Below, piece after piece: positions 4,072 to 35,031 of a stretch of DNA of 64,000 nt. Positions within the stretch are counted from its first letter, which is position 1. Every line of letters starts with the position of its first letter. The translations under genes were made by a program, and so were the position numbers. A model generated the notes under the pieces. The model was not told where the DNA came from. It did no database searches and saw nothing but the letters and a program-made list of their open reading frames with translations. The DNA is from Prasinococcaceae sp. CCMP 1430 (taxonomy: Eukaryota > Plantae > Prasinodermophyta), in assembly GCA_013416795.1 (NCBI GenBank), contig RQSC01000024.1, forward strand, positions 241,483-305,482. Reading direction: 5' to 3'.

Positions 4072-6293
4072 CTAATTCAGCGAGGCGTACATTGCAGCGA
4101 TCTCCTTGCTATACTTCTCCTTGAGCTGCGGACGCTTCGCCTTAAAAGTGGGCGTCGTGAGGCCGTTGTCCACGCTCCAAAGCTCCCAGTCGAGCATGAC
4201 AGCCTTTGGCAGCTCGAAGCCCTGCAGGCGCGACTTGGCGCCCTCCTTGAGCATGGAAGCGAGCACCGCCTCGCGCGCCTCGGGCAGCCGCGAGAGCGCC
4301 TCGGGCGTGCGCTCACCACCGATGCCGTTCTCGTCCGCCCAGGCGACGATGGCCTCTGGGTCGACGACGACCACCGACACGAGGCACGGCTGCAACGAGT
4401 CGCCGTGCACGAAGACCTGGGCGGCAAGCGGAGAGCGGCCGAAAACGCCCTCGAGCTTCTCAGGGGCGACGTACTCGCCTTGTGCAAGCTTGAAAATATT
4501 CTTCTTTCGGTCGATAACCTTGAGGCGCCCGCCGGGGATCCACGTGCCAATGTCCCCTGTGTGCAGCCAGCCGTCCCCATCGATTGTCTCGCGGGTCTTT
4601 TTCTCGTCCTTGAGATACCCGCGGAAGACGCTCGGGCCGCGCACGCAGATCTCACCTCGCGCAAATGGCTTATCGCTCGTCGTGTAATTCATCTCGGGCA
4701 CCGACACGAGCTTGATTTCGTTGACGACGGCCGGCGGCCCGACGTTGCCACCCTCCGTCTCCCCGGGCGCCGTCGAAGACATCACGCCGCCCTCGGTCAT
4801 GCCATAGCCCTCTACTACCTCGCAGCTGAAAGCAGCGCGCAGGAAGTCGAGCACTTCAGCGCTGATGGGCGCCGAGCCGGTGGTCATCACACGCACCCGC
4901 CCGCCGAGCTTTGCCTTAATCTTGTTGAAGACCAGCCGCTCCCAAATCGGGTTGGGCTTCTTGCCCGCCTTGTATGCCGCGCGGTTGGATGCCATGGCCA
5001 TTGCGAACAGCCGCTGCTTCACGGCACCGCCCTCGCGTACCTGCTGGTGGACCTGGCGGAGGCACCAAGGTGGCGCCAGGCGCGCGGCAGTCGCGACGGG
5101 TGTCAGCTTTTGAAGCCAATGCAGCACACGAGCGAGGGCGCAGCGGAGGGGACGAATCCAACGTCCACATGCACGCGCGCGTTCGCGCGGGTACTCACCC
5201 CATCGTAGATGCGGTTGAACAGGCGCGGCACAGAAGAAAAACACGTAGGCCTGAGTTCGGCGATGTCATCCAGTAGCTTGAGCATGTCACCGCGGAAGAA
5301 ACCACAGCGCACACCACGGTGCAGGTTGGACACCAGGGCGAGGCGCTCGTAGATGTGCGCCAGCGGTAGGTACGAGATGTGTGTGTCAATGGTGTCAGGG
5401 TCCGTCTTGCCGACCATCATGCGGCGCTCACACGAGGCCGCGTTGGACACCAGATTGCGGTGGGTGATGAGCGCGCCCTTAGGCAGACCCGTCGTGCCGC
5501 TCGTGTAGCAGACGGTCGCGACGTCGTCCGCATCGCCGGGCGTAAACTCCCGCGGATTCTGTGCGCCCTCGCTCAGCATCACCGAGTAGTGCACCACGTC
5601 TGCGCTCGGGCACACTGGCAGCGCCTTGTCCGACATGAGCGTGTGCTCGGGCGCCACCACCACCAACTTAACATTGGTCTTGGGCACGACGGGCATGAGC
5701 TTGGCGAGCTCATTTGTGGAGCACACGACCGCCTTGAGGTTCGCGTGGTTGCAGATATACTCCACCACGTCCGCACCGAGAGTGTCGTATAGCGGCACAG
5801 ACACGATCCCCATCGCGGAGCACGCGAGCTCGGCGACGGCCCACTCCAAGCGATTCACCATGTACAGGCCGACTGCATCTCCCTTGAAGATGCCGCGGCC
5901 GCGCAGCGCAGAACCGAGGTTCGCGCGCGCTTCAGCCACCTGCTTGTAGGTGTGCCACACGTACGGCTCGCGGCCCGGCGGGGGCGCGCGTGTACCCATG
6001 CACTCGCGGTCAGCGTACCTCTTCAGCCCCGCCTCGAAGCTGTCGTGGGTCGTGCGCACGAGGGGGTCGTCCTCGTAGAAGTCGATCAGCGCCCGCGGCG
6101 ACTGGGCGCTGCGGTAGACGTCCCAGTTGGAGTCGTTCAGGCGCTCGGGTAACACGGCTGCCAGACCGGCCGGCGACGCGCCGATCGCCACGCTCGCCTC
6201 GAGTGCTCCAGCCTCATCCCTGCTGGCCTGTGTGCCCCTCCCTGCGCACACATGGCACGCGACCGCCGCGGCACGGCGCCGCGCGGCGTCCAT
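4072..6293 (-). CDS. LACS: Long-chain acyl-CoA synthetase, plant peroxisomal LACS6/7-like
   Basis: AMP-binding motif YTSGTTGLPKG, SYLPLAHIYER, YGMTE, GWLHTGDIG, IDRKKNIFKLAQGEYVAPEKLE, LTTPTFKAKR. Exons 6293-5199 and 5052-4072, intron 5198-5053 (GTGAGT...GCCAG). Confidence 0.95.
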
Positions 6294-6989
6294 CGCGCTG
6301 AGCGAGGCGCGCGCGGGCCGTGAGGATGGTGAGGTCAGCGCGAGTTGCGGGCGCGCTCGTCGATGCTCGTCTGATACTCACGTGCGCGATGGGGGCCGCG
6401 CGGCGCAAGCCGGCAGCGCCAAGACGCGCCAGCCTGCGCGCGGCGCCTCCTCAGCCCTCTGCGCTCGCCTAGATCCCCCCGTTTACCGCCTCCTCTACCA
6501 CTTCCTCCCTCCCACCCACATCAACACCCCTGGCGCGCCGCGCAGGCCCCGACCGACCTGGTCCACGCCGCGAGCGCGAATCGGAAGTGCCGCGGCTGCC
6601 CCCGCGCGGCGCGGCGCGCAGGCGCGCGAAGGCGCGCCCGCCTCCGCACCGCCGCTCGCACGAGGCGCGCGCGCGCGTGACAGGAGGCTCCTTGACCAAT
6701 CCCAGCCCCTCGCGCCCTCACCTGCCCTCGCCCCGACGCAGCGCGTACGCGCTGTGGGGGTGCTGCGGAGCAGAAAAGCGTCGTCTCGAGAGAGCGAGAG
6801 GGAAAAAAACAGAGCTGCAATATAAAAACGGGAGAGTAATAGCATATGTCGAAATGAATTGGATTCTTCACGCGCGAACGCAGATGCGGATCTTTTTTTT
6901 TTTTTTTTACGCGGGGGCGCCACGNNNNNNNNNNNNNNNNNNNNNNNNNNNNNNNNNNNNNNNNNNNNNNNNNNNNNNNNNNNNNNNNN

Positions 6990-7878
6990 CGGCGTCCGCC
7001 GCCGCCGGGCCGCGAGTCGCGCGAATGTGTACGTCAGCGGCCGCGCGGCGGCCGCGCGGCGCGCGAGCGCAGCGGCACGACGCGTGTCAGTGCGAACCCT
7101 AAGTGGTGCACCGGTGCGGCGCCCTCTCTCTCTCGTGCTGACTCGTGCGCGCCGCCGCTGGCCTTATGCCCCACCACACGTCGTCCCACTCAACCTCGCA
7201 TCGCCTGTCTCACAGATGCTGCCGCCGCTGATACCGCCGAAGAGTCCTCCAAGGCCGCGCTCGATGCGCTCATGGCCGAGTCGTGGAAGGACGGAGTGTA
7301 CCCGGCGATGCACTACAAGGTGCGCGCGTGGCTGCGGCGCAGGGCCGCGGCGCGGTTGCCGCGCCCCGCCTGGCCACTCTCGCTCGCCTGCCTGCGATTG
7401 ACACCACGCCGCCGTCTCTGACGCCGCGCGCCGCTGCCGCTCGCCTCCCCTGCAGATCGACGCGGCGTACAAGAAGGCCCCCGAGGGCGAGACCAAGGAC
7501 AAGCTCTTCGCGGCGATGAAGAGCGCCGAGGCGGTCACGGACTTCGGTGCCATCATCGACCACTTCCGCACGGAGGTGGACGAGCAGACCGGCGGCAAGT
7601 TCGGCGACAGCACCGCGAAAGAGCTGAGCGACGAGCACGCGGCGACGCTGCATCTCATCCTGGAGCGCTACGAGGAGTATCTCGGCTCGTTCGGCGAGGA
7701 CGAGGCCGAGCTGAGCAAGAAGGTGGAGCAGGAGCTGGGATGGAGCATGCTGCAGCTGAAGCAGCGCGTGACGGGCAACCTGGGCACTTCGTGGTCGGCG
7801 ATGCCCGTCTTCGGCACCAGCGGCATGGCGGGCTCCATCGTCGACAAGCGCTCGCTCGGCGGCCAGAAGGCGTTGTGA
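6990..7878 (+). CDS. SDH5: Succinate dehydrogenase subunit 5 (plant-type SDH5)-like mitochondrial protein; start codon lost in the N-gap
   Basis: Exons about 6990-7104, 7216-7319 and 7456-7878 join in frame by GT-AG rules. SAEAVTDFGAII, LSDEHAATL..ILERYEEYLGSFGEDE..LSKKVEQELG and W...VFGTSGMAGSIVDKR match my recollection of angiosperm SDH5. The N-terminus is Arg/Ala/Ser-rich, ending RTLS/D like a mitochondrial presequence. Confidence 0.75.
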
Positions 7879-21988: not shown

Positions 21989-24316
21989 CTACGGCCCCCA
22001 TGGACTGCGCGGCGGAAGCCCCGTCACGTCCACAGGCGGCGTCGCCACGGCGACGCCATGCATGGTCGGCCCGTGCGGTGGCGCGCTCGTGATCATGCGA
22101 GGCTGCATGCCGGCCCCCAGCGTCCCGTGGGGTGGAGGCGGCACAATTGGTGCCTGGCCGCCCGCCGCGGGTGCTCCGCCCACCACCGCTCCCGCCGCCG
22201 CCAGCGGTACCTGCAGCATCGGCGCGACCGTCCGTTTCGCGGCGGCTTCGTTTCCCTGCCTGATGAGCAGCGTAGGATCGTTTGCGGCCGAGTCGCGGCC
22301 CCAGCTCGCCTGCCCTGGCGGCCCCGCCGAGCTCTGCGGCGTCAGGTGCACGGTGGACGTGGTGACCGCCGCGGCGCCACTCTGCGCGGAGCCCAGGCTC
22401 GTGAGGCGATAGTAAGGCTCCTTGAGATCGAGCTTTGCGGTGGCGACCATCGGGCGGCCGTGGTGGAGTGGGTTGGAGCTGCCGCTCCGCTCGACCTGCA
22501 GGCTGATCTCGATGTCGTACGACTGCCGCGAGTGCGCGGTGAGCTTCAGGTAGCCCGAGAGCACCTGGCCGGCGACGAGCACGAGCGGCGTCGACATGAG
22601 GCACCGCAACTGGTGCCAGTGCGTCGTGGGCAGGCCGGGCGCCGTCGAGAGCCAGCGAGCGGCCTTGGAGCCGTTGAAGAGCACGTCGAACCAGCACGCC
22701 AGCCCGTGGCAGCGCCCCACCGAGGTGGAGACGTAGTGCAGCGGCATGACGATCTCCTGCAGGTCCTTCTCGTCGGCCGTGGTGAAGTCGATGACGTGCG
22801 AGACGGGCGCCGCCAGCAGCAGGTTGGGCGAGAAGGAGTCAATCACCGGCTGCTCGAGGTAGGCCTTCGTGGCCGTCTCGTACAGGGCCTCCATGTCGAC
22901 GCCGTAGTAGTTGCTCTGCTGCCAGAAACCCGCGCGGTTCAGGACCTCGGTGTAGAGGAACTCGTCGGAGAAGGGCGACACGTGGATGCGCCCCAGCATG
23001 GGGTACATGCGGCCGTTGGGCTTCATGAAGCGCTTGCGCGCGATGATGTACGTCTCGAGCATGCGCTCGTTCACCAGCAGCGTGCCCATGGGCTCGGAGA
23101 TGAGCACGTCGGCCTGCTCGGGCAGCTCGATCTCTTCGACCTTGCCGCGGATGATCTCGATGCGGCTCGCGTACACCGGGTTGGACTCGACCAGCCGCCG
23201 CGCGTGCTCGCACACGCTCGACGCCTCGATGGCGTACACCTTGCGAGCACCCGCCTGCACGGCGAAGATGCCCAGGATGGCCGTGCCCGCGCCCACGTCG
23301 ACCACCACCGCGTCCTCGAAGTCGACGTGGTTCTCCAGGATGGCGGCGTAGTACGTCGACGTGCGCACCATGTCCTGGAGCATGTTTTGCTGGTGCAGCA
23401 GCTGGCCGTAGTAGTGGAAGTAGAGCTCGGCGCTCGCCCTGTCGGTCTTCTGGTAAAAGAGGGAGTCCTCCGCCGCCCCTTGCTCGCCGCCGCTGCCGTT
23501 CCCCCCGAGCGCGAGGGTGTCGAAGCTGTTCTTGCCGTCGCTGCCGCCGTTGACGCCCGCGGCCGCGCCGCCGCCGCCGAGGCCGCGGCACCTCTCCACG
23601 ATCTCGGCGAAGCGCTTCGTCGACTCCGAGCTCGGCAGCTGCACGAGGAACGTGCGCCGCACGCGCGCGCGCTTGCTCGCCTTGCGCCTGCCCCCGCGCC
23701 TGGCCTCGCCGTTGCCGGCGCTCCCGTTGCGCTTGCGCGTGCCCGCGCCGCCGCCGCTGTCGCCCGCCGAGTCGAAGGCCTGGCCAGCCTCCTCGTCGCT
23801 CTCGTCGGTGGGCAGGCCCTCCGAGCTCTGCGCGTCGGGCGAGCTGTTGTTGAACGAGCACGACGTGAGCGCGCGCGTGGCGCCGCCCTCGTCGCCGCCG
23901 CCCGCGCGGCGCGCGACCTCGAGCGACCACAGGAAGCGCTGGCCGCCCATCGCGCACCATTGCAGCCGCGAGTCGGCCGCCGCGCGCACCTCCACGCCGT
24001 CGGCCGTGTTGAGCGTGATGTACGTGTTTCCGTCGCCGTGCTCCTCGAGCCACAGGATGGCGGGGATGGCCTCGCCCACCTCGACGGGCGGCGCCGCGTG
24101 CGCGCCCGTGGGCGCCTTGTCGAAGAGCTCCGAGGCCGTCACGCCCTCGAGCACGACCGTCGGGAAGGTGGTGCTTGGGCCGTTGGCGATGTCGCCCGCG
24201 CCGCCCGCGTCGTGGACGGTGCCGTTGCCGTTGCCCGCGCTCAGGCCGCCGGTCAGCGCGCCGCCCTCGCCGAGCGGGCAGCCGGCCGCGCCGCCGCCGT
24301 CTCCCAGGCCTTGCAT
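21989..24316 (-). CDS. PRMT4: Protein arginine N-methyltransferase PRMT4/CARM1
   Basis: YFHYYGQLLHQQNMLQD, VVDVGAGT, double-E loop SEPMGTLLVNERMLE, THW loop THWHQ, LDLKEPYYR. First plausible ATG at 24316. Confidence 0.93.
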   Translation of the reverse strand: MQGLGDGGGAAGCPLGEGGALTGGLSAGNGNGTVHDAGGAGDIANGPSTTFPTVVLEGVTASELFDKAPTGAHAAPPVEVGEAIPAILWLEEHGDGNTYITLNTADGVEVRAAADSRLQWCAMGGQRFLWSLEVARRAGGGDEGGATRALTSCSFNNSSPDAQSSEGLPTDESDEEAGQAFDSAGDSGGGAGTRKRNGSAGNGEARRGGRRKASKRARVRRTFLVQLPSSESTKRFAEIVERCRGLGGGGAAAGVNGGSDGKNSFDTLALGGNGSGGEQGAAEDSLFYQKTDRASAELYFHYYGQLLHQQNMLQDMVRTSTYYAAILENHVDFEDAVVVDVGAGTAILGIFAVQAGARKVYAIEASSVCEHARRLVESNPVYASRIEIIRGKVEEIELPEQADVLISEPMGTLLVNERMLETYIIARKRFMKPNGRMYPMLGRIHVSPFSDEFLYTEVLNRAGFWQQSNYYGVDMEALYETATKAYLEQPVIDSFSPNLLLAAPVSHVIDFTTADEKDLQEIVMPLHYVSTSVGRCHGLACWFDVLFNGSKAARWLSTAPGLPTTHWHQLRCLMSTPLVLVAGQVLSGYLKLTAHSRQSYDIEISLQVERSGSSNPLHHGRPMVATAKLDLKEPYYRLTSLGSAQSGAAAVTTSTVHLTPQSSAGPPGQASWGRDSAANDPTLLIRQGNEAAAKRTVAPMLQVPLAAAGAVVGGAPAAGGQAPIVPPPPHGTLGAGMQPRMITSAPPHGPTMHGVAVATPPVDVTGLPPRSPWGP

Positions 24317-26287: not shown

Positions 26288-27015
26288 ATGAACCATCAAG
26301 GCGTAGTTCTGCATGCGCCCCGCGTCCGGCGCCGCGCGTTCGCGCGACGTGGTATCGCGCTTCTGAGCGCGCCGCGTGCGACGTTCGAACGAGCGGAGCG
26401 AGCGAGCGAGCGAGCGCGCGGGCGCCCGGGCGCCGGCGCGGGTGGGTGGTGGGTGGGNNNNNNNNNNNNNNNNNNNNNNNNNNNNNNNNNNNNNNNNNNN
26501 NNNNNNNNNNNNNNNNNNNNNNNNNNNNNNNNNNNNNNNNNNNNNNNNNNNNNNNNNNNNNNNNNNNNNNNNNNNNGGCGCGCGGCGCGGCGGCGGGGTC
26601 CCGCGCCGCGTTCGAGGCCAGCCCGTACGCGACCGGCGCCGAAGGCGGCGGTGGCGTCGACGTCGCGCTCACGCCGTGCGCGCTCTACGTGCGCGCGCGA
26701 GACTCGGGCGGCGTTGGCGCGAGCATGCGGCCGTACGAGCGCAGGGTGGCGCTCGCGGCGGTGGGCGGCGTCGCGATCAGCCCACTCGAGGACGGCTTCA
26801 TCTGCGTGCGCGTCCCCGAGGAGACGACCGACGAGCTGCTGGTCGTCTCCGACAAGCGCGCATTCGCGCGCGCCCTCGCGGCGGCATCGGGGAGGCGCCT
26901 CCCGCTGGAGACGGCCGAGACCTTCGAGTACCGGCCTGCGCCGCGCGAGCGCGCGCAGGCGAGCTTCGCCGCCAACGGCGGCGGCGTCTGGGCTCGTTTG
27001 CGCGCCGTACCGTAG
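26288..27015 (+). CDS. Stand-alone myosin TH1 (tail homology 1) domain protein, plant-type; interrupted by an N-gap
   Basis: ALYV...ERRVALAAVGGVAISPLEDGFICVRVPEE.TDELLVVSDK...FEY....GGVWARL* resembles plant TH1-only proteins. The putative start MNHQG at 26288 and the 5' exon structure are uncertain. Confidence 0.7.
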
Positions 27016-27157: not shown

Positions 27158-29482
27158 TCAGCGCGGCTTGCGCCACGAAGATGAGCCTCTGGGCTTGGGC
27201 GCATCCTTCTTCGGCGCGCGATCGACGTCCCCAGGATGCTGCCAATGTGTCTTGGCACCGCTGCCGGTCGCTGCCCCGAAGCGATACTTGGCCTTGAGCG
27301 CATCGCACGCCTTCTGCGCCTCGGCGTCGCTGCGCATGTTGACGAACGCGTACGCCATGGCCTCTCCCGCGTGCGTCAACTTGTACTTCACAAGTACCCT
27401 CTCGACGACGCCAAAGCGCTCGAATTCCTGCGCGAGCGACTTCTGCGTGCTGCCGCTGGCAACGTTGCCAACCCACAAGTTCCTGGTAGCGATGAAGGCA
27501 TCCCCAGCAGTCCCTTCCGTCTGCATCGTCGAAGACTGGGGCGCCTCGCCACCCGCGCACGCACCAGCCTCGACACGGCGGCTCCGGTTGCCGTTGCTCG
27601 ACGACGCGCCAGAGCTTCCCGATCCCAAGCGCTTGAGCTGCCGAGCGACGTGCTGCGGCTTCTCCCGGTGCCGCCTGATGCCCACGCTCTCGTGCTCGAA
27701 GAAGCATTCGTAGCGCACAACCTCTCCCTCCAACACGCGCTGGCGCATCTCGAGGTCCGTCCACTCCACGAACTCGACGATCGCGAAAAACGTGTCGGGC
27801 GCGTGACGGTTCTCGCGCACGATCGTGCGGGAAACGGTGCCCCACGCAGCGAAGAAATCGGACACGTAGTCCTCGGCAGCTCGGTAGGACTCGGCGATCT
27901 CGCCCTTGCGACCTCCCCTGTCTTTGCCGCGGCGGCCATCGGAAACGTCGGCGAGAAACTGCTCCACGAATATCAGTGGGAGCGCCGGGATGTTGAGCTT
28001 TGGGCAGTTGTCGTCGCCAACGATGTAGCCATCCTCGTCAACCTCAAGGTTGTCCAGGCCAGCTGTCGCGAACTCACGCCTCGCGCTGCTGCCCTTAGCG
28101 GATGTGACCGCCGCCACGGGGCTGGCGCCCTCCGACTCCACTTCCTTCGCGGTGCCGTTTGCGACGGACCCAGCGAGTGGAGGCTGCGTCGGTTCGGGCG
28201 TTGGGGGGGAGGCGAGCTTATCGTCGCCGTGCACGCTCGTATCCACGCACTGGAGCTTCGAACCGAAGCCCGGCGGCGCATTCGGCGCCTCCGCCTCCGC
28301 ATGGTTGTGCGAACGTGCCTGCTGCTGCTGCTGCTGCTGGGCCTGCGGCTGCACTCTCATGCGCGAGGGTGTCACGCATTCACTGAGCCATGCTTGGTCA
28401 ATCGGGAGTACGGCGCGCGCCGACGGATACGCGTCCTGAAGCGCAACGACAGCCACCGCCCTGAAGGCCCTCGCACCGCGACGAGTGGACAAGGTGTCGA
28501 CTGCCAGTGCAACGTGTGTATCCGCCGCGTCCGCGTCGAGCTTGAGCGGGAACAAAAGCTGCAGTGCGCGCCGCCGCGCGTCGTAGCGCGGGACGGCGAG
28601 GCGCGGGTTGGCGAGCACCTCACGCTGCGCGCGGTGAACTGCCTCATCGAGGGCATGCTTGCGGCCCTGCGGCGCCAGCGCCGCCAGTGGCACGTTCGCC
28701 GCGCGCGCCGCGACGTCGAGAGCAGCGCCCGGCGCAAGGGCCGCAGGCCAAAAGCTCGGGTCGTAGTCGAGCGGGAGCGAGCGCACCGGCGGGCGATACA
28801 GGAGGTCGAGTGGGTCGTCGAAGAACGTGGCGCGCTCGGGCACTCGCACGAGAGCTTCTGTCGCGTTCCACGGAGACGCGGGGTCGCGCAGCTCCTCAGC
28901 GGTACAGAGGGCGTACATCTGCCACGGGCGCTGCGCCAGCGAAGACTGGCTGGAGCTGCTGTGCAGCACGGCATAGATGGGGTCCTCACTCGTGCGAGTG
29001 AGGAGAGACGTGCAGAAGCACGCCCATGTTGGCACGCCGTGCTCGTCGAACGATTGGAGCACCAAGCCCTGCGCCACCAGGCACACGAAGTGAAGGTCGA
29101 GATACTCGGCCAGAACGTCGGAGCTCTCGCTCCCTGCGATGCCCCACTGCTCTGCCTTGGCCATGCCCTCAAGCTGGTCCAGCAGGCTGGGGTCGACGTT
29201 CGCAAATGTGAAAAGGCCAGGGGCATCCGGACGCCAGCCTTGCAGCAGAAGGCCGGCGGTGTTCAGCTCGCTCCACATGCCGCGCTCGCCCATGAGCTGA
29301 TTTCCAGCAATCGCGGGCTCGCACCATCCCGGCTCTGGGCCAATCTCAGGGAAGAGCATCGGCAGCACCCCTTTGGAGACGGCGGTGCCCCGGCGCAATG
29401 ACTCGTGGCCGTTGGCGTGCGCGGTGCCGTTGGCCGCAGCGCATTGCTGGTGAAACTGGTGGTGGTGCACGACCATCGCCAT
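27158..29482 (-). CDS. DUF3825-like domain fused to two C-terminal RRM-type domains
   Basis: About 29230-28380: LEGMAKAEQW, VLAEYL, ACFCTSLLT, PIYA, PERATFFDDPLDLLY, LAVPRY, LQLLFPLKL, VALAV, AYPSAR..IDQAWL. Degenerate RRM at about 27960-27700; clear RRM at about 27500-27270 (RNP2 LWVGNV, RNP1 AYAFVNM). Intronless from ATG 29482. Confidence 0.75.
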   Translation of the reverse strand: MAMVVHHHQFHQQCAAANGTAHANGHESLRRGTAVSKGVLPMLFPEIGPEPGWCEPAIAGNQLMGERGMWSELNTAGLLLQGWRPDAPGLFTFANVDPSLLDQLEGMAKAEQWGIAGSESSDVLAEYLDLHFVCLVAQGLVLQSFDEHGVPTWACFCTSLLTRTSEDPIYAVLHSSSSQSSLAQRPWQMYALCTAEELRDPASPWNATEALVRVPERATFFDDPLDLLYRPPVRSLPLDYDPSFWPAALAPGAALDVAARAANVPLAALAPQGRKHALDEAVHRAQREVLANPRLAVPRYDARRRALQLLFPLKLDADAADTHVALAVDTLSTRRGARAFRAVAVVALQDAYPSARAVLPIDQAWLSECVTPSRMRVQPQAQQQQQQQARSHNHAEAEAPNAPPGFGSKLQCVDTSVHGDDKLASPPTPEPTQPPLAGSVANGTAKEVESEGASPVAAVTSAKGSSARREFATAGLDNLEVDEDGYIVGDDNCPKLNIPALPLIFVEQFLADVSDGRRGKDRGGRKGEIAESYRAAEDYVSDFFAAWGTVSRTIVRENRHAPDTFFAIVEFVEWTDLEMRQRVLEGEVVRYECFFEHESVGIRRHREKPQHVARQLKRLGSGSSGASSSNGNRSRRVEAGACAGGEAPQSSTMQTEGTAGDAFIATRNLWVGNVASGSTQKSLAQEFERFGVVERVLVKYKLTHAGEAMAYAFVNMRSDAEAQKACDALKAKYRFGAATGSGAKTHWQHPGDVDRAPKKDAPKPRGSSSWRKPR

Positions 29483-29908
29483 GTCCACCGCGGCGACGCA
29501 CCGGCCGGGCGAACGTGCGCCACGCAGCCAAGGGCCGCGCGTGCGCCAGCGACGCCACGAGGCGCGCCCTCGGCTCGGCGGTCGGCGCCCGCTCCGCGCG
29601 GCGGCGGCGCAGTGNNNNNNNNNNNNNNNNNNNNNNNNNNNNNNNNNNNNNNNNNNNNNNNNNNNNNNNNNNNNNNNNNNNNNNNNNNNNNNNNNNNNNN
29701 NNNNNNNNNNNNNNNNNNNNNNNNNNNNNNNNNNNNNNNNNNNNNNNNNNNNNNNNNNNNNNNNNNNNNNNNNNNNNNNNNNNNNNNNNNNNNNNNNNNN
29801 NNNNNNNNNNNNNNNNNNNNNNNNNNNNNNNNNNNNNNNNNNNNNNNNNNNNNNNNNNNNNNNNNNNNNNNNNNNNNNNNNNNNNNNNNNNNNNNNNNNN
29901 NNNNNNNN

Positions 29909-30060
29909 CATGCACACCGGCGACTTCCGGCTCGAGGCGCTCGGGGACGGCGATGCGCGCTCCGCGCTCCCCGAAGCCGTGACGCGTGCTCCCGTGGATG
30001 AGCTGTGGCTTGACGACACCTACCTGCGCTCAGGCGCAGAGTTCCCTGCGCGCGTGGTCG
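29909..30060 (+). pseudogene. Fragment of an SNM1/Artemis/Apollo (DCLRE1) beta-CASP metallo-beta-lactamase nuclease
   Basis: HTGDFR ... DELWLDDTY ... FP right after the N-gap. The beta-CASP domain that should follow is absent because the Sec16 ATG lies at 30082. It could be a true fragment or an assembly artefact. Confidence 0.6.
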
Positions 30061-30081
30061 TGCTCAAGGCGGGGGGCGGCG

Positions 30082-33000
30082 ATGGCTGCGTCGGGTGGCG
30101 GATCGGACGCGGCATCGGCCGGGGCATCGGCGAGCGACGCGACGGCGGCCATCGATCCTTCCGTCTCGGGCCTACTGACTGAGGTCGAGGCCGAGGCGCC
30201 CGCGCGCCACAGGGAGAGCGGCGCGGAGCCGGGTGCCGACGGAAGCGAGGGCTACGCTGCAGGCGCCGAGAGCGAAGGCGTCGAGGCAGGGGGCAGCAGC
30301 GGCAACGATGGGAGCACCGACGCCGATGAGTGGCTGGCAGAGAGTACGACGCCGCGGAGCGTGACCGCCACCCTGACCGAAGCTGAGGACTTCATCGCGA
30401 GCGGCCCCAGTGGGGACATCAGCGATCCAGTCGACGATGCCGACGCGACCGCGGGCGATCGTGGCGAGGACCCGATTCACAGTGAGCACGAGCGTGGCGA
30501 GGCTGGCGTTGGTGTCGAGGCAGACGCAGGGGGGACTACCGGCTGGGACACCGACGAAGTTGCGTGCGCCGACGTGCCACTCAAAGATGATGCAAGCGCG
30601 GCCCTTGATCCTGCCGCGGAAGGCTGCGTCGCGAGCGCCGCGACTGCCAACGGTCCGATGTTTGAAGGCGGTGCGAGCTCGCCGGAGGGGCAGCATCAGC
30701 CGCCTGCAGCGGAAGCCGAACCGGTGATCGCTGTCGCAGCTATGGCGGCAGGCCCAATGTTCGGTGCCCCACGCACCGGCAGCGGCGATGCATTCTTCGG
30801 CTCTCTCGGCGGCTGCGCGGACCCGTCGCCATCCGGACGAGCAGCGGGTGCCTCCGCCGTCGAAGCGCCCGCAGCTGCCCAGGTTCGAGCGGCAAGTACC
30901 ACCGCCCCGATCGCGTTCTCATCGTCGACGGATGATCTCGCTGGCACGGGCTCTTTCGATGCGCTTTTCGGAGGTGGCGCGACAGACCCGCAATACCAGC
31001 AGCAGCAGCAGCAACAGGAGCCAGGTGGTGGCCTGCCCCAGGATTGGATCGAGCAAATCGATCCCTCCTCGGGGTACCCCTACTACCTCAACACAGCTAC
31101 AGGCGAGTCGTCGTGGGAGGTGCCCTCTTTGCCGCAGACGCAACAGCAGTCCGAGATGAGCGCGGCGCAGCCAATCTCAGCGGGCGCACAACACGGGCAA
31201 ACGCAGGTGGAGACCACGGTCGCCGCCGACGAGAAAGCGCACCAGGCGCAGCAGCAAGAAGCCAGCGCGCCAGGTGCGGACGCTGCTGCAGGGCACCATG
31301 AAGGCCTCCCTGAGGGCTGGATTGAGCAAATTGACCCTTCGAGTGGGTACCCGTATTTTCTCAACACGATCACCGGCGAGAGCAGCTGGGAGAGGCCGAG
31401 TTCGACGCCACAGCTGGACGCGCAATCGTGCCCGCCCGTGATGTCGTCGGAGCTGGGCGCGCCTGACGACGGTGGCGCGTCATTCTTTGACAAAATTGGT
31501 GAGTCCACGGCCGCTTCGGAGCCTGCGCCTGCATCTCCCGCCCCGGAGCCCGCGCCTGCCCCGCCCGCCCCTACGGAGGAGTCCAATGGCGACGACGGTT
31601 CACTCTTTGAGGGTCTGCCACCGCCAGAGGAACCCTCTGCGACTTTGCAGTGCGCACCTGGCGCGGATGGCCAGGTTGCACTAGAATCGGCAGCCGAGGA
31701 GACACCAGCCGTGGCGGCCGTCGAGCCATCTACTGAGACAGCAGCTGCTGAGGCTCACGCCGTCGCCGGCACGCAGAGCGCCGCGCAGAGCTCCGAGGCA
31801 GATGGAACGAGCGCCGAGGACGTCACGTTTGCCGGCGCCGATGTGGATCAAGAGCAGAGTGCCGAGGCCGGCGAAGAGACGCCCGCTGCTTGTGCAGCCG
31901 ACTCTATCTCAGGCTCGGACGACCTTCCGGACGGGTGGACCGCGCAAACCGATCCGGCCACAGGGCACACATACTACCTGAACACCACAACGGGGGAATC
32001 CTCTTGGGAGCGACCTGCTCCAGCAGCTGGTCCAGTCGCTGCCACACCCGACGCTACTGCAACAGCTGCCACCGGTCATGTCGACAGCCTCGCATATCCG
32101 CATGTGGGGCAGCACGAGCAAGCGCATGCTCAGCAAGAGCATGCGTCAGCCAGCCATGCCGAAACTCATGGCGAGCTCCCGGACGGGTGGGTGTCGGCTG
32201 TGGATGAGTCGTCAGGATACACATACTACACAAACACACACACGGGCGAGTCTTCGTGGGAACCTCCGGTCGAGTCCCCAGCACCGATGGTGCCAGCGAT
32301 GCCAGCGGCGCCAGCGGCGCCGGAAGCGCCAGCGGCGCCGGAAGCGCCAGCGGCGCCGGCGGCACCAGCGCCGTTCACGCCCGTCAAACCCGCTGCCGAC
32401 GCTACGTCCGCGCCCTCACCCGTCGCCTTCACTCCTGTGATGCCTTCGCAGCAGCAAGCTGCGGCACCTGTTCCATTTGTTTCGGCGATGGCAGATGACG
32501 CCCAACTTCAGCGGTATTCAGCACAGCAACAGCAACAGCCATTTGCTCCCACCGCGTGGCAACCGCCCGGCTCGTCCGCTGGATTCGGATTTCCGCAGAC
32601 CTCGTCGCTTCAGCAGCAGCAACAGCCAAGGCAGCTTCCGCCGCCGCCCCGCACGCGCGACGAGGCGCTGCGGTGCCCGGCCGGACGGCCGCCGTGCCCC
32701 GCGGTGGCATTCGGATCGAATGGTCTCATGGTTGTGGCTGGTGCCGGTTCAGGAACCATCTCGGACTGTGGCATTGGATCTGTCGACATGTATCCCCTCG
32801 GGCCATTCCTCAAAGACGGCGGTGTGGATCCCGACTGCGAGTTCCTGGAGCATGCGGCGGCGGTCGGCCCAGCGCGCGGGGGAAGTTGCAACGATAAGTT
32901 TGCCGCCGTGGGCCAGGAGCTGGCGGCACACCGCGAGCAGCAGGACCAGGCGTCACTCTGGCGCTTCCTGGGGACATATGCGCGGCGCAAGGGTGACATG

Positions 33001-35031
33001 GGGGTGGCAGGGCTCAGCAGCGGGGCAGGTGGCGCCGCCGAGCTCGCTGCGGTGCTCAATGTGGAATCAGCGCAGACGGCGGGCGCTCTCATCTCGTCGG
33101 CGTCGAATGGCACCACGGGCCCACACGCAGAAGCGACGGCAGCAGCCGATGTCGAAGCCAAGCTCGCAATCGGTGACCTTGCTGGTGCCCACAGCACTTG
33201 CATGGCTGCCGGCGGCGCGCTGTCGGCACTAGGCTTGCTTATCGCGCTCAGCGGGCGGCTTGGTCCAGACGTTCTGGGCCGCGCCGCCGCCGAGTACACC
33301 TCTGCGACGTTCACAGCAGGAACGCCACTGTCGAGTGCCGCGGCAGTGCTCGCGCGCAATGCCAGTGCCATCTTCACCTCCGCCGCTGCAGACAACGGCG
33401 CGGCGCTCCTGGGCACCTGGCGCCGACATCTCGCATCGATGGTGTGTGCGGGTGCAGAGCCTGTAGCTGTTGGCACGCTCGGAGACCGGCTGTGGGACGT
33501 CCGTGGCGATTTGGTGGGTGCGCACCTCTGCTATGTGCTGGCGGGCTCGACACCCGAAGCCTTTGCACCTGGTGCCCGCCTGTGCCTCGTGGGCGGCGAT
33601 CACAAGCGCTTCCCGCGCACATTCGCACGCGCTGAGACCGTGCTGGCCACCGAGTGCATCGAAGCCGCAGTCATGTCCGCTGCTGGGGCCGCAGGCTCGG
33701 GCGCCAGCGCGCACCCTGCCTCGATGGCACACTTCGCGCCGTACAAGGTGTACATGGCCTCCCTATTGGCAGAGCACGGCAAGGGCAAGGCGGCAGCTGC
33801 GTACGCCGCCGACGCGGCCAAGGCACTGCGCGCTCATTCACCGTCGCCTGACCGCCCGACGGCGGCGATGGTGGCAGCGATTGCCATGGAAGATCGCCTC
33901 AAGGGAGGCGCGGGTGGTTTTCTCGCGGGCATTGGCGGCAACGTCGGCGCTACAGCCAGCAAGATGTTCGGTGGTATTTTCCGCGCGCTCGACAAGGTCA
34001 TCGGCGACGCCGAGCCTGAAATGCAGCAGCAGCAGCAGCAGCAACACATGCAAATGCATCAGGGTGGAGGGGAGGCGAACGGACACGCGCACGCCACGCC
34101 ACCAAGGCACGCGAGGGGCGCAGGAATAGGCGGGCAAGCGCAAGCGCCCGTGGCGCCGGCGAATACGCCCGTCGCGCAGGGGAGCACGGGCGCAAATGGT
34201 ATGACAGGGGGCGAGTCTGATACATCCAAGAGCGAGAGCGTGGACGAGAACAAGACCCCGAATAAGGCTGAGGGTGCGGGAGTGATGGGGCGCATGCTCA
34301 GTGGGCTCTTCGGCGCATCCAAGTCCAAGCAAGCCAAGCTCGGTGCGGAGGAGAACAAATTTTTCTACGACGACAAATTGAAGATGTGGCGCGTGGAAGG
34401 CGAAGACATCCCCGACGAGTTCAAGCCACCGCCGCCGCCGCCGAAGACGAGCTTCCATTCTGATCTCAAGAAGGCCGACGGCGCTCAAGCGGTGGAACGT
34501 GGTATCGGCGGTGGCGCAGGCGCAGGCGCTGCTGGAGGTGGTGCTGGTGGAGGCGGCACTGGTGCCGCATCAGCGGGGGGGGAGGGCGACCCGCTGTGCG
34601 CCCCGCCGCCCCGGCGTGCAACTACACGCGCAGGCCGCCGCGCCAACGTGCGCTCGCGCTACGTCGACACGATGGGTGGGAGCGGTGCCTCTGCTAGCGC
34701 AAACGCTGGCGGGGGCTTCGCAACTCCGCCCACACCTGCAGCCTTCATGCCGGTCACACCCCCGGCGCCGAATGGGGGCGGCGGAGGCGGCGCCTCGCCC
34801 TCGCCCGCGGCTTTCATGGTGCCTGGCCCGGCGCCCGTGGCGCAGGCCGAGGCACCCACGGCTGAAACGAGTGCTGCTACCCCGCCGCCAATGGATGCCA
34901 TGGCAGCGTTCGTCGCCGAGCAGCAGGCCCAGGCCGCAGCTGCGCCCGTCTCCGCGCCTGCGGCGCCTGTGCCCGCGGAGCCGTCCAGCGGCGCGTTTGA
35001 CGACAGCGGCTTCGAGGACGTTTCGCTCTGA
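30082..35031 (+). CDS. SEC16: COPII scaffold Sec16 (MAG5-like) carrying four WW domains in its acidic N-terminal region
   Basis: RPPCPAVAFG, WRRHLASM, LGDRLW, AHLCYVLAG, LVGGDH...FA, PYKVYMASLLAEHG, KQAKLGAEENKFFYDDKLKMW, RSRYVD. WW repeats at about 31030-31125, 31303-31400, 31921-32016 and 32173-32270. Intronless. Confidence 0.88.
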   Translation: MAASGGGSDAASAGASASDATAAIDPSVSGLLTEVEAEAPARHRESGAEPGADGSEGYAAGAESEGVEAGGSSGNDGSTDADEWLAESTTPRSVTATLTEAEDFIASGPSGDISDPVDDADATAGDRGEDPIHSEHERGEAGVGVEADAGGTTGWDTDEVACADVPLKDDASAALDPAAEGCVASAATANGPMFEGGASSPEGQHQPPAAEAEPVIAVAAMAAGPMFGAPRTGSGDAFFGSLGGCADPSPSGRAAGASAVEAPAAAQVRAASTTAPIAFSSSTDDLAGTGSFDALFGGGATDPQYQQQQQQQEPGGGLPQDWIEQIDPSSGYPYYLNTATGESSWEVPSLPQTQQQSEMSAAQPISAGAQHGQTQVETTVAADEKAHQAQQQEASAPGADAAAGHHEGLPEGWIEQIDPSSGYPYFLNTITGESSWERPSSTPQLDAQSCPPVMSSELGAPDDGGASFFDKIGESTAASEPAPASPAPEPAPAPPAPTEESNGDDGSLFEGLPPPEEPSATLQCAPGADGQVALESAAEETPAVAAVEPSTETAAAEAHAVAGTQSAAQSSEADGTSAEDVTFAGADVDQEQSAEAGEETPAACAADSISGSDDLPDGWTAQTDPATGHTYYLNTTTGESSWERPAPAAGPVAATPDATATAATGHVDSLAYPHVGQHEQAHAQQEHASASHAETHGELPDGWVSAVDESSGYTYYTNTHTGESSWEPPVESPAPMVPAMPAAPAAPEAPAAPEAPAAPAAPAPFTPVKPAADATSAPSPVAFTPVMPSQQQAAAPVPFVSAMADDAQLQRYSAQQQQQPFAPTAWQPPGSSAGFGFPQTSSLQQQQQPRQLPPPPRTRDEALRCPAGRPPCPAVAFGSNGLMVVAGAGSGTISDCGIGSVDMYPLGPFLKDGGVDPDCEFLEHAAAVGPARGGSCNDKFAAVGQELAAHREQQDQASLWRFLGTYARRKGDMGVAGLSSGAGGAAELAAVLNVESAQTAGALISSASNGTTGPHAEATAAADVEAKLAIGDLAGAHSTCMAAGGALSALGLLIALSGRLGPDVLGRAAAEYTSATFTAGTPLSSAAAVLARNASAIFTSAAADNGAALLGTWRRHLASMVCAGAEPVAVGTLGDRLWDVRGDLVGAHLCYVLAGSTPEAFAPGARLCLVGGDHKRFPRTFARAETVLATECIEAAVMSAAGAAGSGASAHPASMAHFAPYKVYMASLLAEHGKGKAAAAYAADAAKALRAHSPSPDRPTAAMVAAIAMEDRLKGGAGGFLAGIGGNVGATASKMFGGIFRALDKVIGDAEPEMQQQQQQQHMQMHQGGGEANGHAHATPPRHARGAGIGGQAQAPVAPANTPVAQGSTGANGMTGGESDTSKSESVDENKTPNKAEGAGVMGRMLSGLFGASKSKQAKLGAEENKFFYDDKLKMWRVEGEDIPDEFKPPPPPPKTSFHSDLKKADGAQAVERGIGGGAGAGAAGGGAGGGGTGAASAGGEGDPLCAPPPRRATTRAGRRANVRSRYVDTMGGSGASASANAGGGFATPPTPAAFMPVTPPAPNGGGGGGASPSPAAFMVPGPAPVAQAEAPTAETSAATPPPMDAMAAFVAEQQAQAAAAPVSAPAAPVPAEPSSGAFDDSGFEDVSL

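Follow-up and report, generated by a model that had tools for sequence, protein, structure and literature searches.

The 64,000-nucleotide stretch analysed here (hereafter the window) comes from contig RQSC01000024.1, positions 241,483 to 305,482 of the forward strand, of assembly GCA_013416795.1 of the alga Prasinococcaceae sp. CCMP 1430. It carries a gene, transcribed from the minus strand, for a protein that combines a DUF3825 domain with an RRM-like module and a canonical RNA-recognition motif (RRM). Within DUF3825 the protein belongs, as a divergent member, to an unnamed subfamily of the green lineage that green algae and early land plants have in common.

Gene model and modules

An earlier reading made from the sequence alone had described an intronless open reading frame (ORF) of 774 amino acids at this locus, and both of its ends have now been fixed with two other assemblies (Table 1). 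The first is a Tara Oceans metagenome scaffold, L001, whose protein (P0001) is 98% identical to that of the window; the second, locus L002, belongs to a related alga and encodes a 53%-identical orthologue (P0002). The gene is collinear with both orthologues in the alignment. Its N-terminus had to be checked because a run of N lies upstream and the reading frame remains open through it. L001 supplies sequence across this region, and both L001 and L002 show in-frame stops upstream of the start without any earlier ATG, which confirms 29482 as the start. The three proteins have the same type of C-terminal end with an SSWRxPR motif, and together with the upstream stops this makes the gene model complete and intronless. 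We conclude that this intronless gene is genuine and belongs to the nuclear genome of a marine green alga rich in GC. Between the gene and its 98%-identical counterpart on L001 there are 22 differences, too few for an informative ratio of nonsynonymous to synonymous substitution rates. A 721-aa antisense ORF overlapping the gene has no Pfam match and is read as an open frame arising from the composition of the window (~68% GC).

Table 1. Features of the locus in window coordinates, with residue numbers for the parts of the protein.
Feature	Residues	Position	Strand	Basis
Complete intronless gene, 774 codons + stop	1-774	27158..29482	-	ORF translation; stop codon at 27158-27160
Conserved N-terminal motif (GWCxPA...ERGMWS..N..G..L.GW)	45-103	29174..29350	-	71% identical to P0002
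DUF3825 domain	104-365	28388..29173	-	Pfam PF12873, E 3.7e-35
DUF3825 C-terminal lobe: helices, four-stranded sheet, helix with Y352 and R356	232-360	28403..28789	-	RelE/ParE-like arrangement (predicted)
Linker 1: Q-run, P/A/S-rich	373-475	28058..28366	-	29% identical to P0002; orthologue lengths vary
RRM-like module, opening with CPKLNIPALP	489-619	27626..28018	-	AlphaFold2 topology; conserved in green-lineage family
Linker 2: S/G/R-rich, disordered	620-664	27491..27625	-	pLDDT <50; 25% identical to P0002
Canonical RRM, RNP2 NLWVGNV, RNP1 MAYAFVNM	665-741	27260..27490	-	RRM_1
C-terminal tail, motifs KYRFGAAxGxGAK and SSWRxPR	742-774	27161..27259	-	Alignment with P0002; pLDDT <50
Assembly gap (N run) between the DUF3825-RRM gene and the divergent Sec16 gene, intergenic or 5' region		29615..29908		N-run listing
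Myosin_TH1 tail (unconventional myosin, C-terminal part)		26578-27015	+	Pfam Myosin_TH1, E 9e-10
PRMT-type arginine methyltransferase (PRMT_C, PrmA), long N-terminal extension		21989-24100	-	Pfam
Sec16 homologue (TPR_Sec16) with four WW domains		29986-35031	+	Pfam

The layout first proposed for the protein, a DUF3825 core followed by a low-complexity linker, a degenerate RRM and a canonical RRM, was confirmed by Pfam and AlphaFold2, with the degenerate RRM as a predicted RRM-like module. Both profiles that the proposal had named for comparison are matched above their cut-offs: PF12873 over positions 1-238 of its 238 at 122.1 bits (cut-off 27), and RRM_1 at residues 669-733 with an E of 4.2e-12 and 46 bits (cut-off 20.7). 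An NCBIfam scan detected the RRM and nothing else. Besides exceeding the profile cut-off, the C-terminal domain has the RNP1 and RNP2 aromatics and the predicted beta-alpha-beta-beta-alpha-beta fold that define an RRM (PF00076). The N-terminal motif matches no Pfam family, is recognisable in the relatives from Dolichomastix, Ostreococcus and Diphasiastrum and in P0004, and is predicted by AlphaFold2 to be poorly ordered, with a predicted local distance difference test score (pLDDT) of 51-63; a linear interaction motif and a small knuckle without zinc are two possibilities for it. Linker 1 is presumably disordered. Identity to P0002 amounts to 71% in the N-terminal motif, 66% in DUF3825, 61% in the RRM-like module and 49% in the canonical RRM, against 25-29% in the linkers, which argues that all four modules are under constraint. 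The DUF3825 domain of the window protein looks remodelled rather than decaying.

The middle module resembles an RRM mainly in its predicted structure. Its match to RRM_1 (E 0.099, 13 bits) stays below the Pfam cut-off of 20.7, the top PDB match of its family profile was the RRM of CIRBP at an E of 0.64, aligned in the RNP1 register, and hhalign gave a probability of 2.7% when the module was compared with the canonical RRM of the same protein. The aromatic of the RNP2 position is replaced by N (KLNI), and the RNP1-like segment FFAIVEF retains one aromatic. Modelled by AlphaFold2 within residues 470-774, residues 489-619 form, in order, a strand, two short helices, a long helix, two strands, a helix, two strands and a helix, with pLDDT 84-93 across most of the module, so that an RRM-like topology with extensions is predicted. 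Three tandem-RRM chains align over both modules, by 144-147 residues each, at a root-mean-square deviation of 10-12 Å. The module is conserved in the alignment with the proteins of Chara, Diphasiastrum and Ostreococcus and with P0004, P0006, P0007 and P0012, where its family form reads CPK(L/M/I)NIxxLP, then AE..V...F..YG.V....VRE.K...GK.FAIVEF..W.D...R..L..GE.

The green-lineage family and its remote relatives

An exhaustive HMMER search with residues 40-375 among 1.84 billion representatives returned 199 relatives at E<=1e-3; nine reach E<=1e-30. A word-index search found the full architecture in P0001 and P0002 only and, when run with the DUF3825 part alone or with the RRM-like region, nothing beyond these two. 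The best HMMER matches beyond them, at 34-40% identity, are green-lineage proteins together with several marine-metagenome proteins. Those with names include a transcript of Dolichomastix tenuilepis (MMETSP0033) and proteins of Ostreococcus tauri (CEF96664), Chara braunii (GBG73376) and the lycophyte Diphasiastrum complanatum (KAJ7296721); in the databases such relatives are labelled hypothetical or DUF3825 proteins (e.g. CEF96664.1/XP_003074350.2, GBG73376.1, KAJ7535799.1). With the window protein they share the GWC...GMWS motif, DUF3825, a long variable linker and CPK(L/M/I)NI with the RRM-like module, as well as green-specific H323, P360 and an RRGxRxYR hairpin. On this comparison of sequences, the RRM-like module was already present in the ancestor of the green family as a whole.

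The C-terminal end tells the members apart. Five green relatives (P0004, P0151, P0006, P0007 and P0012) terminate in a treble-clef-like zinc finger, CxxC...VPFxP...PPxCxxC, which in P0007 and P0012 weakly matches PF23477 and which is absent from the window protein. At the position of this finger RRM_1 stands in the window protein, P0001 and P0002 only; it was not found in the other green-lineage DUF3825 proteins, and Pfam scans of 10 close and 103 remote relatives detected none. The canonical RRM_1, where five relatives have a zinc finger, is therefore a trait of the Prasinoderma-type lineage. The earlier idea that an RNA-binding module had been swapped for RRMs fails for the RRM-like module, which is ancestral to the green family; the lineage-specific element is the canonical RRM. 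As a side observation, the C-termini of the five relatives share a fuller zinc-finger module consensus, R..W....T..GK.LY.G.C..C....VPF.P....PP.C..C.

In a maximum-likelihood tree of the DUF3825 domain (quick search, with support from the Shimodaira-Hasegawa-like approximate likelihood-ratio test, SH-aLRT, only) the green sequences form one group of 12 rows with SH-aLRT 90. The window protein lies inside this group, which spans Mamiellophyceae, Chara and a lycophyte. Adjoining it are one dictyostelid sequence and four sequences of unassigned source. From the green clade and its eukaryotic-looking neighbours it follows that DUF3825 has a long history in the green lineage and perhaps also among other eukaryotes.

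Two of these four come from short stand-alone DUF3825 genes on metagenome contigs L010 (gene 6001-7113) and L011 (gene 6001-7188). These contigs, 38-40 kb long and of 63-74% GC, carry many ORFans together with C2H2 zinc-finger and Ephrin_rec_like genes. A giant-virus origin, considered for the many ORFans, was dropped on the GC content and these domains, and for the same reason the contigs probably derive from eukaryotic plankton.

The sequence-only reading had left open a horizontal or an ancient origin and had called for a phylogeny to separate them; the tree supports the ancient one, with a green-lineage clade and no recent bacterial import. Recent acquisition of the gene from bacteria, or a bacterial contaminant in the assembly, would fit the lack of introns and a family most of whose members we take as prokaryotic (a Bacteroidota MAG is the named source of one cluster, and two others are surrounded by typical bacterial genes). 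We nevertheless regard it as highly improbable, since every one of the nearest relatives belongs to the green lineage and shares the extra, non-bacterial modules, and the domain is joined in one frame to an RRM of eukaryotic type. The composition of the gene (66% GC, and 80% at third codon positions) falls inside the range of its neighbours, and the published GC of the Prasinoderma coloniale genome, 69.8% (PMC7455551), is compatible. The flanking genes, for a myosin, a PRMT and Sec16, are eukaryotic, and a 60%-identical orthologue of the PRMT adjoins the P0002 gene in the second alga (L002, 3222-5381, minus strand), in an orientation inverted relative to the window. The same gene is also present on independent metagenome scaffolds. 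Contamination or very recent transfer is not supported. The protein had further been put forward as the window's best candidate for a novel system; it is instead the local version of an unstudied family of green algae and early land plants, neither unique nor newly acquired.

Two details of the flanks may be added. The myosin TH1 gene is convergent with the DUF3825-RRM gene and is interrupted by an N gap at 26458-26576, 3' of which L001 holds a 99%-identical copy of the myosin stretch. The Sec16 gene and the DUF3825-RRM gene are divergently transcribed.

Beyond the green lineage the matches are mostly metagenomic, and the remote relatives are probably mostly bacterial. Of 103 such proteins scanned with Pfam, 102 have DUF3825 at E<=1e-3. 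At the same threshold their partner domains are CSD (14 proteins), OST-HTH/LOTUS (11) and GYF_2 (2), and S1, zf-CCCH, TIR_2 and zinc ribbons occur once each. The association of DUF3825 with OST-HTH/LOTUS and cold-shock domains named in the earlier reading is thus borne out, and it is mainly because of these fusions to RNA-binding domains that an RNA-related role is ascribed to DUF3825. In the loci of two bacterial relatives that were inspected, the DUF3825 genes are solitary, with no operon partner suggesting a function and no antitoxin-like neighbour. One of them (P0204; L003-L006, gene at 5001-6197), read on 24 contigs carrying it, has surroundings of mobile-element or defence-like character, with genes for TraG, SSB, a transposase of the DDE type, a MoxR-type AAA protein and an AAA_21+RloB pair. 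Together with the single TIR fusion, this context hints at a role in bacterial conflict. The PADLOC defence models did not match DUF3825, and matched only the CSD of two bacterial relatives.

Predicted fold and conserved residues of DUF3825

An AlphaFold2 model of residues 40-375, built on a 149-sequence alignment, has a pLDDT of 86.1 and a predicted template-modelling score (pTM) of 0.83. It consists of two alpha/beta lobes, in each of which one or more helices precede a four-stranded sheet. An internal duplication as the source of the two lobes was considered and rejected at the sequence level (hhalign probability 0.1%).

Modelling the core and comparing it with known structures by Foldseek, as had been proposed, gave a confident model and no significant match in the PDB; the best consistent rows were the ParE and YoeB toxins (E 0.2-0.5, TMt 0.5). 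When the model was compared by VIA-align with 48,161 representative chains and Foldseek's list, toxins filled nearly all of the top 22-30 rows, namely RelE/ParE/YoeB/HigB/YafQ/BrnT, colicin D, colicin E5 and a CdiA-CT RNase. The superposition covers residues 232-360 of the protein and toxin chains of 84-96 residues over their entire length, and the likeness of this C-terminal lobe to RelE/ParE-type toxins was consistent over three structure searches. The N-terminal lobe gave no informative structural match, and none of a nucleic-acid-binding kind, and an ESM Atlas search gave no usable match. We take the likeness, which is one between a predicted model and known folds, as a weak lead, and do not assign the window protein to the RelE/ParE superfamily.

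Residue statistics were drawn from 137 aligned remote relatives. Near-invariant positions are E111, W113, L124, Y127, F156, T158, G159, L160, W187, P215, P265, P298, P312, Y340, A351, Y352, R356, W365 and L366, and polar residues are conserved at 70-90% at T131, R134, K140, N157, H259, R263, R288, N292, D323, T344 and R360. The window protein retains E111, W113, Y127, T158, W187, P265, N292, P298, Y300, Y352, R356 and W365. It carries substitutions to H131, C134, L140, C157, S159, A259, N263, E288, H323, F340, A344 and P360, of which A259 and N263 lie in a stretch (residues 255-265) where loop length varies and the alignment is uncertain. Of the bacterial-type polar set (R134, K140, N157, G159, H259, R263, R288, D323, Y340, T344 and R360; 70-97% in remote relatives), none is kept here.

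Part of this replacement is a feature of the green clade. Among 11 green-lineage relatives aligned, H323 occurs in nine and P360 in 10, and C157 recurs in P0002 and in three streptophyte-type members (Chara, Diphasiastrum and P0004). The loss of R134, K140, G159 and Y340 is additional in the window protein when compared with the other green proteins: F340 and S159 are found in it and P0002 only, and L140 and C134 are specific to it. The green clade also has a basic set of its own, R274, R284, K314 and the hairpin RRGxRxYRA at 334-342, which in the window protein takes the form STRRGARAFRA (residues 332-342). In the model, Y352 and R356, the most invariant polar residues, lie on the helix after the last strand.

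The conserved positions named in the sequence-only reading can be set against these statistics. The PxY is real (P in 99% and Y in 69% of the 137) and kept as P298 and Y300, and so is the terminal R/H, with R in 135 of 137 and H once, kept as R356. The NT pair is also conserved (N 81%, T 94%) and does read C-T here, yet the C is no private loss, as it is shared with Chara, Diphasiastrum, P0004 and P0002. At the N before Y, the window protein does have E, and the family has N in only 39% and S in 28%. The suggestion of altered or lost catalysis has the support of several replaced family-conserved polar residues.

The fold lead and the invariant residues could also describe an active, RRM-guided endoribonuclease. 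DUF3825 would then be a metal-independent RNase of the RelE/BECR type, with Y352, R356 and the green H323 and arginines as its active site, and the RRMs would deliver the substrate RNA. The top ~22-30 structural matches of the C-terminal lobe are the toxins named above, covered over their whole chains, and Y352 and R356 sit where we take the catalytic residues of RelE, YoeB and YafQ to lie, on the helix after the last strand. The many polar residues kept by remote relatives (E, T, R, K, N, D, H, R, Y) look enzyme-like, the fusions to RNA-binding domains and, once, to TIR would suit a nuclease, and D323H, present in nine of 11 green relatives as in the window protein, suggests a site remodelled and not decayed. 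Profile-level similarity to the RelE/ParE/YoeB families is nevertheless absent, N157, H259, R263, Y340, T344 and R360 are lost in the window protein, and ParE proteins, which have this fold, do not act as RNases. We consider such an enzyme unlikely.

DUF3825 might instead be a protein- or small-ligand-binding module, the whole protein serving as an adaptor that touches RNA through its RRM or RRMs alone. The conserved core is mostly aromatic or hydrophobic (W113, Y127, F156, W187, P265, P298 and W365), the N-terminal lobe has no nucleic-acid-binding structural match, and the N-terminal motif is of low predicted order, like a short linear interaction motif. ParE-type toxins, members of the matched fold, target gyrase, a protein. 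This explanation leaves unaccounted for the repeated, independent fusion of DUF3825 to CSD, OST-HTH, S1, CCCH and RRM domains and the conservation of an arginine-rich hairpin in the green clade, and it appears improbable to us.

Function and comparison with known systems

We lean towards a multivalent RNA-binding regulator in which the chemistry of DUF3825 has been lost or altered relative to its bacterial relatives. Given the replacements N157C, H259A, R263N, D323H, Y340F, T344A, R360P, R134C and K140L, we think it more likely that the domain binds or regulates, or that its chemistry has changed, than that it works as a conventional nuclease. The canonical RRM, keeping its RNP1 and RNP2 aromatics, would hold single-stranded RNA, as the RRM-like module perhaps would too. 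The flexibly tethered DUF3825 core would use its basic C-terminal lobe to contact either the same RNA or the ribosome, presenting the RelE/ParE-like helix and sheet, the family-invariant Y352 and R356 and the green-specific arginine-rich hairpin RRGxRxYR. Likely settings would be post-transcriptional control or RNA surveillance. The module layout, the family to which the protein belongs, its spread in the green lineage, the pattern of conserved residues and the predicted folds are shown by the data above. We infer three parts of this proposal: RNA as the ligand of DUF3825, its non-catalytic status and the biological process.

Several points weigh against it. RNA binding by DUF3825 is suggested by domain co-occurrence only, and no experiment on any DUF3825 protein was found in the literature search. 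Sequence-profile searches of the PDB gave no significant relative and no RelE/ParE family, and ParE_toxin, YoeB, HigB and RelE are absent among the 25 best-represented of the 81 Pfam families matched by 103 members at E<=10. Loss of the bacterial-type residues is, moreover, no proof of inactivity, as the green H323 and arginines could form a different active site.

A bolder scenario would join the bacterial and plant observations. DUF3825 would be an unrecognised RelE/BECR-type domain, RNA-cleaving or ribosome-engaging, widespread in bacteria as single-chain effectors linked to CSD, LOTUS or TIR domains. In green plants an ancient derivative, joined to the RRM-like module, would have persisted as a dedicated factor of mRNA surveillance or translation control, and the Prasinoderma-type lineage would have retargeted it by exchanging the zinc finger for a canonical RRM. 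We regard this chain of events as distinctly unlikely in its entirety.

DUF3825 is a catalogued Pfam domain, present in bacteria and several eukaryotes, and the C-terminal domain of the window protein is an ordinary RRM. The literature search found no paper mentioning DUF3825, and the supplementary material of the P. coloniale genome paper is silent on the family. New here are a conserved green-lineage family of four modules with the RRM-like module ancestral, one lineage with an RRM in place of its relatives' zinc finger, and an initial, weak indication from the predicted fold of a link to RelE/ParE-type toxins, along with the family-invariant residues Y352 and R356. If DUF3825 does act on RNA or the ribosome, it would represent a new class of RNA regulators or effectors common to bacteria and plants; if it does not, the result is a tidy annotation of an orphan family. 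The window protein is a tractable entry point to an orphan domain common to bacteria and plants, and not a demonstrated enzyme.

Among known proteins, the remote PF12873 members (e.g. the CSD-DUF3825 protein TAE54541.1 of a Bacteroidota MAG, and OST-HTH-DUF3825 proteins) resemble the window protein in matching the full-length profile, in their association with RNA-binding domains and in W113, Y127, T158, W187, P265, N292, P298, Y352, R356 and W365. They differ in being usually about 250-600 aa long, in having as any second domain an N-terminal CSD or OST-HTH and no RRM, and in keeping N157, H259, R263, D323, Y340, T344 and R360, each of which is replaced in the window protein. With the RelE/ParE/YoeB/HigB and colicin/CdiA-CT toxins the likeness is at the level of fold only, in a helical hairpin, a four-stranded antiparallel sheet and a C-terminal helix. 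RelE/ParE-type toxins have no sequence similarity to DUF3825, whose corresponding unit is embedded in a larger two-lobed domain without an antitoxin partner.

A parallel in overall design is offered by MARF1/Limkain b1-type proteins, which combine a NYN nuclease with RRM and OST-HTH/LOTUS domains (PMC2848206); the OST-HTH paper that describes them treats DUF88/NYN and not DUF3825 (PMC2848206). Both types of protein join an RNA-acting or RNA-associated globular domain to an RRM in one chain, and OST-HTH or cold-shock domains appear elsewhere in the DUF3825 family. The core of MARF1 has a NYN/PIN fold unrelated to DUF3825, and there the nuclease assignment is supported. MARF1/Limkain b1 is thus an analogy of design to the DUF3825-RRM protein and not a relative of it.

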